From Eutreptiella sp. 'Long Island Sound 2002' (lineage: Eukaryota > Protista > Euglenida): a stretch of 64,000 nt of DNA. Shown here in pieces: positions 36,661 to 43,015 of the stretch (its first letter is position 1; the number at the start of each line of letters is the position of its first letter). Location: positions 11,470,001-11,534,000 of the forward strand of contig OZ038378.1 of NCBI GenBank assembly GCA_964036045.1, written 5' to 3'. A program made the position numbers and the translations under genes. Below the pieces are notes generated by a model. It was not told the origin of the DNA, did no database searches, and was given only the letters and a program-made list of their open reading frames with translations.

Positions 36661-39600
36661 TCTTGCACAATAGGATGAGGCTAACATGCTTTCATGAGTG
36701 CAATAGTGAGCCTTGAGTTGCCAAATTCATCATGTTCATAAGGATTTGTCCCATGCCATACACAAAGACGCGTAGAACAAGAGAGTGTGCATTTTTTCAT
36801 CCTGCAAAAGAGGTCTGCCCCCGGAGCCCCCCCTTCAGGGGGGGGGGGGTTGGAAAAGGGGCTCCAAGCCCCCTCCCCCCACAGTTTCATTTTTTCCCGG
36901 GCCCAACGCTACACAAGCTACCGCCTAGCACCACTTAGGTCCAGGACGGGGACAAAGCGGTTCCTCAGAAATAGCAGCACATGGGGAGAAGGATGGAGTA
37001 CTGCATATGCCGCACAATGCAAAAGAAGCATAATTTGCTGGTGCCACACGCAAGGGTTACCTAAGGGAATGTTGTTCACTCAGTGGCACACAGTGTGCAC
37101 ACAATGCAAAGTGTTCTACATTGACAACGATCCAAACCCTAGTTTTGGGAGCGACTAGGTTTGTTGTGTGGAAAATCAGTCTAAATCTGTAGGTGGCACC
37201 TATGTGAAAAAAAGTTGTGCATGAGGGGGCTCTGGAAAGGGTGCTTGGTGGTCGTTGAGGGGTTTGACCCAGGAGGGAGTATTTGCGTGATGTGCGCCTG
37301 TCCCGTGCCCAGCTTTTGTGCCCGATCCTAGCATTGATTAATCACTGGCCGGGTCGCTGGCCGAATGGCAAATTTACACATAAATGCGTAAATTTTACTC
37401 AAACGGCCGCTTTTTGGGGCACGGCGGTGTTTACATGTGTAAATTCGGTGTAAATTGTTGTATATTGCTATGTGTGCACTATTTCATGATGTAATTGAGC
37501 TTCTTTGTCTTGCAAGTTGTGTGCTTTTTGTAATTTTGTTCACATTGTACCTGGTTGTACCTGGTTGTCGAGGTAGGTTTCATGCGCTTGGTCGGGTAGG
37601 GTAATCTATGCACAGAAGAATGGATGTGAGGTCAACTTGGTTCTACAACAGAGTCGGTGATAGGGGTGGCCTCCTCCCCAAACTTGGTGGCACAACAACG
37701 TTGGTTTCAAGGGGTAGGGTAGGGTAAGGAACAATGTATGGAAAGAAGAGAACCTATGACCATAATGGCAGAAACTATTATAGGACAAATTTTAGAGGAG
37801 AACAACGTCGGTCATAGGGGCGGCCGCCTCCCCAAACCTGGCAGCACAACAAGGTTTCTAACAAGGGCCTCCTTCCTTCTCCTGTGTTGTCCTTGGTCTC
37901 GGGGTGGGGTAGGGTAATGAACTATGTCTGGAAAGAAGCCCGGGGGGGGGGGGGAGGGCGACTCCGCGGGTCCTAGGACACCAACTCCCCCCCCCCCCCC
38001 AGGGGCCTTCGGCCAACAGTTAGTTGCCAAAGGTGTTGCCCTCAGGTGTCCATGGGCGCCTAAGGCGCCCGATGCTCCATGAACACCAAAGGTGCCCTAA
38101 GGAAATTTTTGTCCAATTTGCACCCCAGCACTATCCTTTAACCCAACCTTGACTCACGCCCACCCCCAATCCTCAGCCTACTCCTATCCCTACACCTAAC
38201 CCTAACCGTAACCCTAGCCCTAACCCTAGCCCTAGCTCTCACCCTAGGCTAGGGTCAGAGTGAGTGTTGGGGTCCAAAATGGAGAGCAATGATGTGGCAA
38301 CAGCAGCCATGAACGAAATTTGAGGGATCTTGTTCAGTTCAATCAACATGGCTGGCATGGCCATACTAGCTGGCTGCAAAGGTTAGGGTTAGGTTTATGG
38401 TGATGGTATGGTTAGAGGGAGGGCAAGGGGAGGTAAGGGGAGCCTGTGCCCCCTCCCCCACCTGGAACCCCCCCACCACCACCATCCCGAATCGCCCCAC
38501 TTGGACCCCCCCCCCCACCGACTCTCCCGGAGCGCCCCCCTCCTAGACCTCCCCCCCCCCATTCGCCCCTCCCTGACCCCCCCCCCTCCAATGGCGATGA
38601 CAGCTGTGGGGCAGGCGCAGCCAGAGCCAAATGCGGACACTGCAACCTGACCATTTGAGGCCCCCTCCAATGCCCCCCCCCCAAGGGGCCTCCAGCCAAC
38701 AGTTAGTTGGGGGGGTAGTTGGCGTCCAGAACCAAGGGGTCGCTCCCCCCCATGGAAAGAAGAGAACCTATAACCACTAGAAATTATTATTGGACTAATT
38801 CTAGAGTAGAATAAGGTCCGTAGTAGGGGTAGCAGGGAAAATGGTAGATTTCTTTGCAAATTTTTTGAAAAAACGGGGAAAAAACAAAAATTTACACTGA
38901 AATTTACATTCACTGGCCTTAATGCTTGCCCCTATCCCGACCTTCCCCCCAGTTTTGCCTTCACATAGAGAAATCCCCAAAGCATACCAGTATCAACCCT
39001 AAACCAAGACTGAATATTCCGACCAATCTGGTGGGGAAGGGAACATAGTGTACATAACTCAAAGCAGCTTGAGAAGGACCCCTAGGCCCCTGCTAACAGA
39101 CCCCCCCTCCGAGATCCCCTTGAAGATTCTTGGGTGCACTTGTTTGCCTCTGTTTGTGCTTGTACAAGTGCCCATGACAAAGGCTCATATCACAGATTTG
39201 GTTGCCATACATCGAAATTTGGGGGCATGCTCTTTATAAGGAGCAAGGTCCAAGAATTGTAGCTGGAGGTGCCCACTGTGAGGGGACAATACACCAGGCT
39301 GCGCAGTAACAGGGTGTCCATTTGCGTTTGTTTTGAACTTTTGGGGCGTCTGTGTGTGTCCGTTTTAAACAGATGCGAGCGGCATGTATGGCTCGCTACT
39401 GCTCCTGGCGCAGTCTCTCCCCATGGTAATCAGGACCCTACCCTTGGGCAGTCACACTACTGGGACCAATCAAGCGACCACAGAGACTCAAATCAAACTC
39501 ATCAAATGTTGTCTTGTCACAAATTCACTTGGGCCTCAACCCTTCACCTTCCCATTCTCAATGTGCATCAATCCACGTTGAAGTACCTTGCTAAATGCAT

Positions 39601-39937
39601 AATGATTTGCTTTTTTGAGTGTGCATATCCGCTTTGCTTGTTTTGCCTCTATGGCTTACCCTCCAAATAACACTTACGTGCTAAAATCGAGTCTGTAGCG
39701 TCATTTGACAACATCTTCATTTTGTCAACGCCATTGGCACTCAACACACAGAACACAGAATAAAAGCCAGCATGTCTTTATGGTCGTATCAAATGAACAT
39801 TAAGAAATGATTCGGCTGCCTCCCACCAAAAGGACATCAGGCATCAATGAGAAAGAGGAAATTTGGTCTCCCCAGATGGATTGGATCTGCAAGCAAATTG
39901 TGAATCGAATCAACCCCCCCCCCCCTGTCCAACCCCG

Positions 39938-39983
39938 ACACTTTCTGAGTGTCTATTTTTTCCCGTGTCTTTTTCTTTTTTCG
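39938..39983 (+). other. Genomic euglenid spliced-leader exon followed by a truncated relict SL
   Basis: 39940-39965 is ACTTTCTGAGTGTCTATTTTTTCCCG, 24/26 identical to the Euglena SL ACTTTCTGAGTGTCTATTTTTTTTCG as recalled. 39966-39983 is TGTCTTTTTCTTTTTTCG, resembling the SL part 3' of its internal AG. The ATG follows 20 nt later. Confidence 0.88.
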
Positions 39984-40003
39984 GTGAAGTGTGGGTGAGA
40001 TAA

Positions 40004-41221
40004 ATGTTGCGCTTCTTCGCTGTTCTATTGGCCGTTCAACTTGTCCTATCTTCGGATGTGGTCATCCTCAACGAAAAGAACTTCGATGATGTAATCAGCC
40101 AGGAGGAACATATGCTAGTGGAGTTCTATGCTCCTTGGTGCGGCCACTGCCAGTCTTTGGAACCAGAGTATGACAAGGCAGCCAAGGAGCTGAAGGCCAA
40201 GGGGATCAAGATTGCCAAGGTGGATGCCACTGTGGAAGAAAAATTGGCCGAGAAGTACGGTGTTGAAGGTTACCCGTCGCTGAAGCTGTTCAAGAAAGGA
40301 GAGTTTGCGAAGGACTACCAAGGCAAGAGGACCTCCAGTGGAATTGTGAGTTACATGAGTAGTGTTGCTGCAGGGGAAGAACCAGAAGAAGAGGAGGAAG
40401 ATGATTATGGAGGAGGTGAAGATCCTAGTGAAGACGAGTATGGCGAAGAAGGAGGTGGCGCAGGGGCAACGCAGGAGGCAGTGGGCCTCATCAACTTGGA
40501 TTCTTTCACCTTTGACAAAATTGTGGGGACCAATCAGTATGATGTCTTTGTAAAGTTCGACAATTCCTACGCATATGGCGATAAAGAGAACCAGTGGGTC
40601 AAACTGTCTCGCCGCATTGCCAATCTCACCAGCCCCAGGGCACGTGAGTTCCTTTTGGCTGTCGTTGGGGTGGAGGACTATGGGGACAAACTAAATGACG
40701 ATATGAGGGAGAGATTTGGCCTCAAAACAGACGATTTCCCAGTTTTCAAGCTTTTCAAGAGGGACTCCATTGAGCCTGTTGACTACACTGAGGCTGTGGA
40801 AGTTGATGCCATGTCTCATTTTTTGACCCGTGAGTTAGATATGTGGATTGGCCTGCCCGGATGTCTTGAGACATTTGACCGCCTTGCGATTGGTTTTGCA
40901 GCTGTGTCACAGACAGAGCAGCAGGACAGACTTACCAAGGCAAAGGACGAGTTGGCTCGTGTGACAGGTGAGGTTGAAAAGAAGACAGGCCAGTATTATG
41001 TCCGAGTAATGGAAAAGGTGGGTGCTAAGGGCTCAGACTACCCTCAAGCTGAAGCACTGAGAATTGAGAAAATTATGGAGTCCAAGATAACTGAAGATAA
41101 GAAGGCAGAGATGGAGCAACGTCTGCATATTTTGGCGAGTTATGGTGCCAAGCTTACGAAAAAGGAGCCTGAGCCTGAGCCTCAGCCTGAACCTGAGTCT
41201 GAACCTGAGCCAGAGGAGTAA
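40004..41221 (+). CDS. Intronless PDI-family protein: signal peptide, redox-active thioredoxin domain (WCGHC), acidic linker, ERp29/Windbeutel-like b and D domains; 405 aa
   Basis: MLRFFAVLLAVQLVLS signal; VEFYAPWCGHC...IAKVDAT...YGVEGYPSLKLF; ERp29-type LDSFTFDKI..VKFD.SYAYGDK, VGVEDYGDKLN..FPVFKLF, IGLPGCL and YVRVM...RLHILASY. Confidence 0.93.
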   Translation: MLRFFAVLLAVQLVLSSDVVILNEKNFDDVISQEEHMLVEFYAPWCGHCQSLEPEYDKAAKELKAKGIKIAKVDATVEEKLAEKYGVEGYPSLKLFKKGEFAKDYQGKRTSSGIVSYMSSVAAGEEPEEEEEDDYGGGEDPSEDEYGEEGGGAGATQEAVGLINLDSFTFDKIVGTNQYDVFVKFDNSYAYGDKENQWVKLSRRIANLTSPRAREFLLAVVGVEDYGDKLNDDMRERFGLKTDDFPVFKLFKRDSIEPVDYTEAVEVDAMSHFLTRELDMWIGLPGCLETFDRLAIGFAAVSQTEQQDRLTKAKDELARVTGEVEKKTGQYYVRVMEKVGAKGSDYPQAEALRIEKIMESKITEDKKAEMEQRLHILASYGAKLTKKEPEPEPQPEPESEPEPEE

Positions 41222-41389
41222 TTGGGCAGGCCTGATGTCTACTTGTTTTTGAGGTCACACAGTTCATGCATTTTTGTTGGCATGGATTGCACAATGCCAC
41301 AGAGAGCAAACAAGTGGCAGGGAATTCCAGGATTCACACACCCACCCACTTCCGGTGGTGATTCAAATTTAATTCAGGGTTACGGTAGC

Positions 41390-41637
41390 GGTGTTTTCTT
41401 CAGCCTACAGTCATTGTGCATCATGCACACTGGGAAGCCTACAGGCGTGGCAGTCTCCCACTGCATAACCTGGTTTCAGACAGCAAACCCTCACTACGTG
41501 TCAGATCCGCTACGACAGTCATTTGTGGGATCATCGTAGCACTGGACAGCTCTGAACCTTGATTCTGAGGGGTTACCTCGAGTACTGTGAAGTGAGCGGG
41601 CTACGCCAGCTCATCTTGGTCTGAGCCAAAAAAAAAA
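41390..41637 (+). mobile_element. 5'-truncated poly(A)-tailed retro-insertion with 19-bp target-site duplication
   Basis: AATTCAGGGTTAC(G/A)GTAGC at 41371-41389 and 41636-41654; A10 at 41628-41637; body homologous to 35180-35520. Confidence 0.8.
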
Positions 41638-42269
41638 TTCAGGGTTACAGTAGCAGCACAAGACTAGTGCACAACTGCACAAAGGGTTTGGCTTTGATGA
41701 GGAAGTGCTGAAAGTAGCCATACATGGGCAATGCAATCCAATGCAAATCCCTGAATGCTGAAATCGACGCAGTTCCTGACCTGAGCTGATTAGCTCAGTG
41801 TTTGGAGCTCAATCACAAGTTGTGGACAAATTATGAGGTGTTACTTCTGTCAGATCAGAAGTTGCACTGTGGTATACTCAAGGTAGGAATGCAAGTGGCT
41901 CCTTCTTCGTTGACTGCAGCCCCTGTCTTTGTCAGGGGAAGAAGCTATGGTATATTCTGAGAGTGTACTTAGATTCCGAGACTCTCTCGTACTGTTGCAG
42001 AACTGTTGCAGCTTCGTCAAAAAGTCCAACCCCGGCCTGAGGGCGTGGTTCCTTTGCAATTTTGGGAGTAGCTGGCTCCTACTTGGCAGCCAGTGTACTT
42101 AGAGCGCGTGCAGCGTGTGCTGTCACTTTATGGCCCCTCAGAGCCCTATGCAGGGCTGGAGTTCAGGAGGTGGAGACATCTGTTGAGCTCCAAAAACATG
42201 CTGCTGTACATGCCGCACAGGCATCCACATGAGCTGCGACAGCCACCTGAAGTGTGGTGAGCATTTGCA

Positions 42270-43015
42270 AAATTGCGCACCACAACGGGTGGGGGGGAGC
42301 TGTCGCGGGGGGCGCAACGGGTGGGGGGAGCTGTCGCGGGTGGCGTGACGGGTGGGTGGGGGGCAGTGATGTAGTAGAACGGCCGTACACCGTAGGAGGA
42401 GGGTGGGTACCTCCCCTGACCCCCCCCTACCTCCCTCCCCTTGGACCCCCTCCCCCCCTCCCTCCTCCTCTTGCAATGTTTGAGGCTGACAGCCAAAATT
42501 TTGCTTCGGCGCCTTCGGTGCCAAGAGGATTTACGCTTCAAAATTTTTCGGTCCCCCTTCGGTGGGGACCATAGGGGGACCGAAGGAGGAGGGGGGGTCC
42601 GGCCGAACCCTCCCCCCCTTCTATTACTTCCCTGGGGGGGGTGCTGTCGTGGGGGGCTGACGGGTGGCAGGCAGTTGTCGCGGGGGGCGCAAGGGGTGGG
42701 GGGGAGCTGTCGCGGGTGGCGCGACGGGTGGGGCGGAGGTATCGCGGGGCGCGCGATGGGTGGGGCGGAGCTGTTGCGGGGGGCACGACGGGTGGGGGAG
42801 AGCTGTGAGCCACCCCGCGCCCACCCTGCCACCCGCCGCGCCCGCCGCGACAGCTTCACCCCCACCCGTTGCGCCCCCCGCAACAGCTCGGCCCCACCCA
42901 TCGCGCAACCTGCGGTAGCTTCCGCTCCCCCTCACCTGCCGCGTCCCCCGCGACAGCTCCAGCCCCCCCGTCACCCCCCCCCCCCCCGGCGACAGCCCCC
43001 CCGTCGCCCCCCTGG
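42270..43015. repeat. GC-rich repeat of about 30-bp units (GGGGGAGCTGTCGCGGG...) arranged as a foldback
   Basis: Forward units at 42270-42375 and 42650-42806; reverse-complement units at 42808-43015 (42751-42806 pairs with about 42848-42906). Confidence 0.8.

Follow-up and report, generated by a model that had tools for sequence, protein, structure and literature searches.

The window analysed here is a stretch of 64,000 nucleotides of a euglenid genome (assembly GCA_964036045.1, contig OZ038378.1, positions 11,470,001 to 11,534,000 of the forward strand), within which an intronless gene for a protein of the protein disulfide isomerase (PDI) family is preceded in the DNA by two spliced leader (SL) sequences, one complete and one partial. 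The product of the open reading frame (ORF) combines a thioredoxin domain (CGHC; PF00085, 118.7 bits), an acidic linker, an ERp29_N domain (PF07912, 115 bits) and an ERp29 C-terminal domain (PF07749, 69.5 bits), with all three Pfam scores above the cut-offs, and the CGHC thioredoxin together with both ERp29 domains places it among the PDI family members with an ERp29 module. Judged by eye, its hydrophobic N-terminus resembles a signal peptide. The layout that the original prediction had read from the letters alone, namely a complete SL, a second copy, 20 nt and an intronless 1218-nt ORF, is exact in the sequence, and the features of the locus are collected in Table 1.

Table 1. Features of the SL-bearing retrocopy and its surroundings (window positions; SL, spliced leader; TSD, target-site duplication; UTR, untranslated region; SINE, short interspersed nuclear element; C13, the paralogous locus described in the text).
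Feature	Position	Strand	Remarks
C12 homopolymer run	39914..39925	+	1 nt 5' of the upstream TSD copy, outside the TSD
Upstream TSD copy	39927..39937	+	11 nt, GTCCAACCCCG; directly 5' of the SL
Complete SL, assigned to the second round	39938..39965	+	canonical 26 nt = 39940-39965; compared with the SL in the genome's SL-RNA genes, edit distance 2
Relict SL, putatively first-round	39966..39983	+	= SL positions 11-26; homologous to the 3' part of the C13 SL-like unit
Original 5'UTR	39984..40003	+	20 nt; 19/20 bases same as C13
Intronless ORF	40004..41221	+	1218 nt, 405 aa; intact, uninterrupted
3'UTR of the retroposed mRNA	41222..42023	+	holds two nested elements
Later SINE-like insertion	41390..41637	+	~248 bp, A10 tail; absent from C13
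Inherited upstream copy of the ~21-nt C13 TSD	41830..41850	+	downstream copy in C13 only
5'-truncated dispersed SINE-like retroposon	41851..42023	+	inherited from C13; A5 tail = 3' end of the retrocopy
Downstream TSD copy	42024..42034	+	11 nt, GTCCAACCCCG; directly 3' of A5

The complete SL is 28 nt long and reads ACAC TTTCTGAG TGTCTATTTTTTCCCG, i.e., AC followed by ACTTTCTGAGTGTCTATTTTTTCCCG. Its two 5' bases, AC, lie beyond the textbook 26-nt SL and are also encoded by the genome's own SL-RNA genes, which read …GGTAC-AC-TTTCTGAGTGTCTATTTTTTTTCG and continue into an intron beginning GGTATATAC; close to its 3' end, the window SL carries two T>C changes. Directly abutting it is the 18-nt relict TGTCTTTTTCTTTTTTCG, which lies at an edit distance of 3 from the part of the SL that follows the internal AG, in agreement with the earlier claim that the second copy starts just after this dinucleotide. 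The locus therefore displays two marks of a recycled retrogene: a DNA-encoded SL directly 5' of the gene's UTR and outside any SL-RNA gene, and, 3' of the full SL, a stacked older copy cut at the SL internal AG. The 18-nt SL core occurs once in the 64-kb window, compared with 0 occurrences expected from 100 shuffles, and Rfam and tRNA scans of positions 39400-42400 returned no matches.

The boundaries of the insertion are equally well marked. The 11-mer GTCCAACCCCG occurs exactly twice in the window, at the two borders of the unit 39938-42023, as a TSD does; by inference, an exact duplication of 11 nt would be expected by chance about once in 4 million per offset pair. The unit is closed by A5 at 42019-42023, where C13 has A8, and this short A-tail is the same tail as that of an element embedded in the 3'UTR. 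The flanks of the window copy are single-copy and unrelated to those of C13, and neither an empty target site nor an allelic contig was found in the assembly. Judged by its sequence, the unit running from SL to A-tail between two TSD copies is built like a full-length mRNA inserted by target-primed retroposition, of the type carried out by long interspersed nuclear elements (LINEs).

Public sequencing runs support both junctions. Run X1 shows a flat depth of 23-30 across flanks and gene and is therefore DNA-like; its contigs cover the 5' junction (1,380 nt, covering 39700-40093) and the 3' junction (399 nt, covering 41995-42200), each with 0 differences, so that the failure of genomic reads to span the SL-ORF junction, which the original prediction had named as grounds for its rejection, was not observed. 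In addition, the ENA record ERZ25074135 contains the window locus and its paralog at identities of 100% and 99.97% over 7.2 kb; this record and the reference probably go back to one assembly, and it was not counted as independent.

The source of the insert could be traced. A six-frame search of the 2.28-Gb genome revealed a sole close paralog, at G000:C13:39357394-39358626 (hereafter C13), with 95% amino acid identity and a single open frame. By blastn, window positions 39967-42023 match C13 39357357-39359164, sequence outside this range is unrelated, and the sole interruption of the match is a 248-bp insertion present in the window copy alone. Homology with the source begins at the first base of the relict, ends at the A-run and is thereby confined to the mature transcript, as in a processed retrocopy. 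At the 5' boundary, marked here by a slash, the C13 DNA reads …CACTTCTGC ACTTTCTTAG / CGTCGTTTTCTTTCTTCG GTGAAGTG… and then enters the shared 5'UTR. This C13 unit is a degenerate full-length SL at an edit distance of 6 over 26 nt, with one mismatch in the first 8 nt of the SL and an edit distance of 5 in the 3' part, and its internal AG falls exactly at the homology boundary. C13 thus holds one (degenerate) SL unit and the window two, matching the parent with fewer units that has been described for recycled genes (PMC5585692).

The resemblance of the C13 unit to the SL was assessed against all 13,546 AG sites in ~115 kb of sequence not picked for SL content, using the same two criteria. Sites matching the SL as well as C13 does numbered 3/13,546, and all three proved to be genuine relict SLs preceding paralogous genes (a tandem pair of ERp29-like paralogs on contig C24 and one locus on C2), leaving 0 chance matches; the SL-likeness of C13 is beyond chance. 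Furthermore, the window relict and the C13 unit have several derived states in common: both measure 18 nt where the corresponding part of the SL has 16, both show A>T at base six, and both contain an internal C. At the three relict positions where the two loci differ, the window keeps the SL base in 3/3 cases. The shared derived changes therefore indicate that the relict was copied from a mutated genomic template and not from a fresh SL.

The direction of copying, from C13 to the window, is fixed by the TSD of a nested element. In C13, the 5'-truncated retroposon that makes up the last 173 nt of the window retrocopy is bordered by a ~21-nt direct repeat with 2 transitions, of which one copy falls within the 3'UTR and the second just past A8. 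The window has the first repeat only and stops at the A-tail of the element; the element was therefore inserted at C13 first, and the C13 transcript was retroposed later. The dispersed nature of this element was established by a family search in which 40 of 884 first-look candidates were scored, yielding 41 matches, 39 of them elsewhere in the genome at 85-93% identity. Members of the family share a conserved tail followed by A-runs, reach shared lengths of up to ~400 nt, are frequently 5'-truncated and, in other copies, carry TSDs of their own. Between window and C13, the element shows 14 differences, which the family consensus assigns to the C13 lineage (8), the window (5) or neither (1). 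A chimeric 3' element, produced by a template switch to another SINE RNA, was considered and rejected, as ordinary divergence suffices for a difference of 8.3% split 8:5. The second nested element, the insertion private to the window, has a 17-nt TSD of its own (41373-41389 and 41638-41654) and is a very abundant SINE-like element, since its contig depth in public runs, ~34,000-160,000, is 1,000-5,000x the single-copy depth of ~30; in the published repeat annotation, SINEs make up only 0.11% of the genome.

Altogether, it is considered about 80% probable that the window gene is the product of two rounds of mRNA retroposition, with C13 as the intermediate. In round one, an older retrocopy would have settled on C13, where a worn full SL still precedes the 5'UTR. 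The C13 pre-mRNA would then have been trans-spliced at the AG inside this relict SL, a step that would remove the first 10 nt of the relict and place a fresh SL before the remaining 16-18 nt; the predicted C13 mRNA accordingly reads SL plus CGTCGTTTTC…, with the joint right after ACTTTCTTAG. The transcript would have ended at, or been primed on, the A-tail of the SINE-like retroposon in the C13 3'UTR, and the template would have been a complete SL-capped, A-tailed PDI/ERp29-type mRNA from C13 or from the direct ancestor of that locus. Its cDNA would have been integrated on contig C1 by target-primed reverse transcription, leaving the 11-nt TSD; the reverse transcriptase that acted was probably of LINE type, as judged from the form of the insertion. 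The two steps are not equally secure. The second round of retroposition is close to certain, while for the first we infer, from the lack of introns and the worn SL, that C13 is itself a retrocopy; the AG of its relict would be the acceptor used, as judged from DNA and not from RNA 5' ends.

Several points weigh against this interpretation. The first 10 nt of the SL resemble a generic polypyrimidine-AG acceptor, and the upstream half of the C13 match is weaker than the numbers suggest; since the upstream 10 nt of C13 look like any such acceptor, it is the 3' part and the register that carry the argument. The background set comprised all AG sites and not true acceptors. An intron-bearing generation-0 gene was not found in the six-frame genome search: the parental paralog with introns that the original prediction had proposed to look for is represented at high identity only by the intronless C13 copy, and the paralogs ranking after it are partial and do not exceed 52% identity. 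For the C13 copy, neither a TSD nor a poly(A) was detected, with no exact repeat of at least 10 nt between the upstream 80 nt and 4 kb downstream. The X1 and ENA contigs possibly share their sample with the assembly and may thus not be independent of it. Finally, the read evidence consists of assembled Logan contigs, which break at SL k-mers and show presence and copy identity, not trans-splice sites. The two-round proposal as first put forward is supported: the first retrocopy that it had postulated has its counterpart in the intronless C13 locus, with one SL and a homology boundary after the AG, and the window copy shows in addition a TSD and an A-tail, whereas a TSD, a poly(A) and an intron-bearing ancestor were not found for C13.

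These gaps would be accommodated by a single round of retroposition, in which C13 is the original, naturally intronless gene, its acceptor and T-rich 5'UTR resemble an SL by chance, and the window carries an SL joined to a normal 5'UTR. The absence of an intron-bearing ancestor, a TSD and a poly(A) for C13 agrees with this explanation, as does the closeness of ACTTTCT-AG to the generic 3' splice-site consensus, but the match spans the whole 26-nt SL in register, ends exactly where the shared 5'UTR starts and is equalled by no chance match among ~13,500 background AG sites. Moreover, all three window/C13 differences polarise towards the SL, the gene is intronless although the genome averages 8 exons per gene (Euglena literature), and paralogs of the same family also bear relict SLs. 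A single round is consequently regarded as unlikely.

A still less probable alternative is a single event that involved no genomic intermediate, in which the reverse transcriptase switched from one SL-bearing RNA to another or the SL was aberrantly added twice to one mRNA. It draws on the stacked junctions found elsewhere in the genome, a third of which keep the AG (…CG/AGTGTCT) and a few of which are full SL/SL, configurations for which a simple AG-acceptor model fails. At the window, however, the relict is non-canonical and has the length change and the substitutions of the C13 unit, and was thus templated by a mutated C13 transcript; one-step template switching onto a fresh SL is rejected because the relict was copied from an already mutated genomic template.

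An artefact, in which mRNA-derived sequence was joined to chromosome C1 by cDNA contamination or misassembly, is given almost no credence: the insert is colinear with a mature mRNA and the bridging contigs may share the sample of the assembly, but an exact 11-nt TSD is present, short-read contigs at single-copy depth (1,380 nt at the 5' and 399 nt at the 3' junction) cross both ends, the copy harbours a 248-bp SINE that C13 lacks, bordered by a TSD of its own, it has diverged by 4-5% from C13, and the contig-level assembly record is the same over 7.2 kb. Just as negligible is the chance that an SL-RNA gene or pseudogene, or an array of such genes as the original prediction had feared, simply adjoins the ORF, for although hundreds of these genes exist in the genome (748 in conserved context), comparison with them shows that the upstream box (…GGTAC) and the SL intron start GGTATATACTCGC, present in every one, are both absent beside the window SL, which is instead immediately preceded by a TSD and heads a unit that runs to an A-tail 2.1 kb downstream.

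The window and C13 ORFs are intact, with a ratio of nonsynonymous to synonymous divergence (dN/dS) of 0.25 at a dS of 0.10, and both copies have remained intact since under purifying selection. In RNA run X3, a 614-nt contig (39989-40602) shows the window state at 8/8 diagnostic sites, with zero depth in the upstream flank and nearly none past 41968. In run X8, all six letters that vary within the 5' part of the ORF (40108-40404) have the C13 state; the library label of this run is only 'RNA?', which is a guess, and the library is possibly DNA. Taking runs X6 and X8 together, 15/15 of the reported variant letters are C13 states, and a reading of them as strain differences was rejected in favour of contigs derived from the paralog. 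The window copy and the C13 copy both appear to be transcribed, the C13 part of this statement hanging on the uncertain label of X8.

Further members of the family show related features. The tandem ERp29-like paralogs on C24 (L033, L034; G000:C24, ~5.52 Mb) have a worn full SL, ACTCTCTGAGTATCTATTTTCTTTTCG, 13 nt 5' of the ATG, and a worn SL is likewise present at the C2 locus (L042; G000:C2, ~16.66 Mb). Retroposition seems to be recurrent in the ERp29-like gene family. Just 5' of the SL-like unit on C13 (L043 7320-7345; G000:C13), two extra tandem 8-mers, CACTTCTG CACTTCTG, stand before CACTTTCTTAG and resemble a repeated SL 5' end, perhaps produced by slippage. The embedded 41851-42023 element has also been observed in another context: public runs X1 and X6 contain a contig in which the SL is fused to this element right after the CAG at 41932-41934, and because of this SL-element joint it is concluded that the element's RNA is itself trans-spliced and retroposed elsewhere.

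The window is one well-resolved case of a widespread process. The assembly-wide search for the SL core that had been called for returned 5,684 exact cores against 0 in the control, of which 748/5,684 stand in a conserved SL-RNA-gene context. Among the first 30 SL-core loci, 10 were SL-RNA genes and 20 were not, and in most of these 20 the SL was joined to diverse sequences. The strict stacked-SL pattern likewise had 126 exact instances genome-wide, where the control had 0; a stack may comprise up to four units. About two thirds of the stacked junctions listed are cut exactly after the internal AG, whereas about one third of the exact stacked junctions read …TTTTCG/AGTGTCTA, with the AG kept and the cut falling after ACTTTCTG (L053, L063, L066, L070-L072). 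The AG acceptor model does not explain this AG-retaining third. Both junction types can occur within one downstream family (L054 vs L072). Many of the stacked-SL loci (L045-L074) belong to multi-copy families that have the sequence after the stack in common and lead straight into ORFs of 280 to >480 aa. A Pfam search of the ORFs behind ten other SL or stacked-SL loci gave mostly no match; a few stacked-SL ORFs encode C-type lectin, 2OG-Fe(II) oxygenase or cyclophilin domains.

The closest precedent is found in dinoflagellates, whose genes can be headed by stacks of relict DinoSL copies cut at the internal AG, with fewer relicts in the parent than in the daughter (PMC5585692). The euglenid system resembles dinoflagellate recycling in its DNA-encoded SLs before genes, its tandem relicts cut at the AG and its parent with fewer units, as well as in the intact and apparently expressed state of the retrogenes and the genome-wide extent of the phenomenon. 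It differs in belonging to Euglenozoa and not Alveolata, with an unrelated SL, and in that a single event can be reconstructed here from end to end (TSD, A-tail, intermediate locus) and tied to a SINE-like 3' tail; in addition, many of the stacked SLs head multi-copy families. For dinoflagellates, a promoter role of the relict (TTTT/G motif) has been proposed. Within Euglenozoa, the SL-linked retroelements SLACS, CZAR and CRE of trypanosomatids insert site-specifically into SL-RNA genes, whereas in the present case an unrelated single-copy site received a retroposed mRNA whose 5' end is the SL.

Similarities also extend to the LINE-mediated retrocopies of animals, which include cases of 5' transduction and whose formation as processed pseudogenes is favoured by 3'UTR-embedded SINEs (PMC7692494; PMC5199112). 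Common to both are the lack of introns, the A-tail, the TSD, which measures 11 nt here and 17-21 nt at the nested elements, SINE-like copies that are 5'-truncated and a host mRNA ending in an embedded retroposon tail. Unlike the present copies, those of animals carry no trans-spliced tag, and repeated rounds therefore leave no countable mark. For Paulinella, with its candidate gene recycling, SL trans-splicing is discussed as an aid to the expression of newly inserted or retroposed genes (PMC6053224; PMC9311404); a term search of PMC6053224 returned neither a stacked relict SL nor a parent-daughter pair. For euglenids, the full-text literature searched, including Euglena genome, transcriptome and intron papers and with subscription-only papers outside it, gave no report of genomic SL relicts or retrogenes, in line, within that body of text, with the earlier remark that such recycling was not known to have been described in this group. 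The conclusion is thus supported that mRNA recycling, reported in the searchable literature only for dinoflagellates, occurs in a euglenid and hence in a new lineage.

A broader proposal is held with a slight lean in its favour: that Euglena runs an independently arisen, dinoflagellate-like, genome-wide recycling of mRNA, in which thousands of SL-capped RNAs of host genes and mobile families would have been rewritten into DNA, the embedded SL would offer a ready trans-splice acceptor, retroposon tails in 3'UTRs would select the host mRNAs that are mobilised, and SL stacks would count the generations. SL trans-splicing arose separately in euglenozoans and dinoflagellates. If both lineages show the same outcome, with mature mRNAs copied back, re-expressed via the relict leader and copied again, this would point to a general rule: retrocopies that carry a trans-spliced leader are self-sufficient, since the acceptor comes with it. 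Such a rule could help to explain the very large, repeat-rich and paralog-rich Euglena genome, and the SL would give annotators an easy marker by which to recognise retrogenes and to count how many rounds of retroposition they went through. The present locus is unusually clean in this respect, with daughter and intermediate both surviving and the direction fixed by a nested insertion. Furthermore, the TSD and A-tail point to a LINE-type mechanism, and the organism is culturable and editable, so that the acceptor hypothesis is directly testable.

A further feature concerns the sequence upstream of the insertions. The C12 run at the window is pre-existing target DNA, as it lies outside the TSD. 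Of the SL retro-insertions sampled, ~40% have a C or G homopolymer run of 7-15 nt no more than 45 nt 5' of the SL (the window, L014, L018, L048, L053, L062-L066, L070, L072 and L073), and C runs of at least 9 nt are frequent in the genome, at ~30 per 64 kb. The runs may reflect a preference for such targets or the addition of untemplated bases. As regards the SL-RNA genes themselves, the minus strand at G000:C1:147229513-147229813 holds five SL starts, each preceded by the upstream context of an SL-RNA gene, at intervals of exactly 69 nt, a spacing too short for complete SL-RNA gene units. Elsewhere on C1 and C2, SL-RNA genes recur at intervals of ~17-40 kb, as if within a larger repeat.

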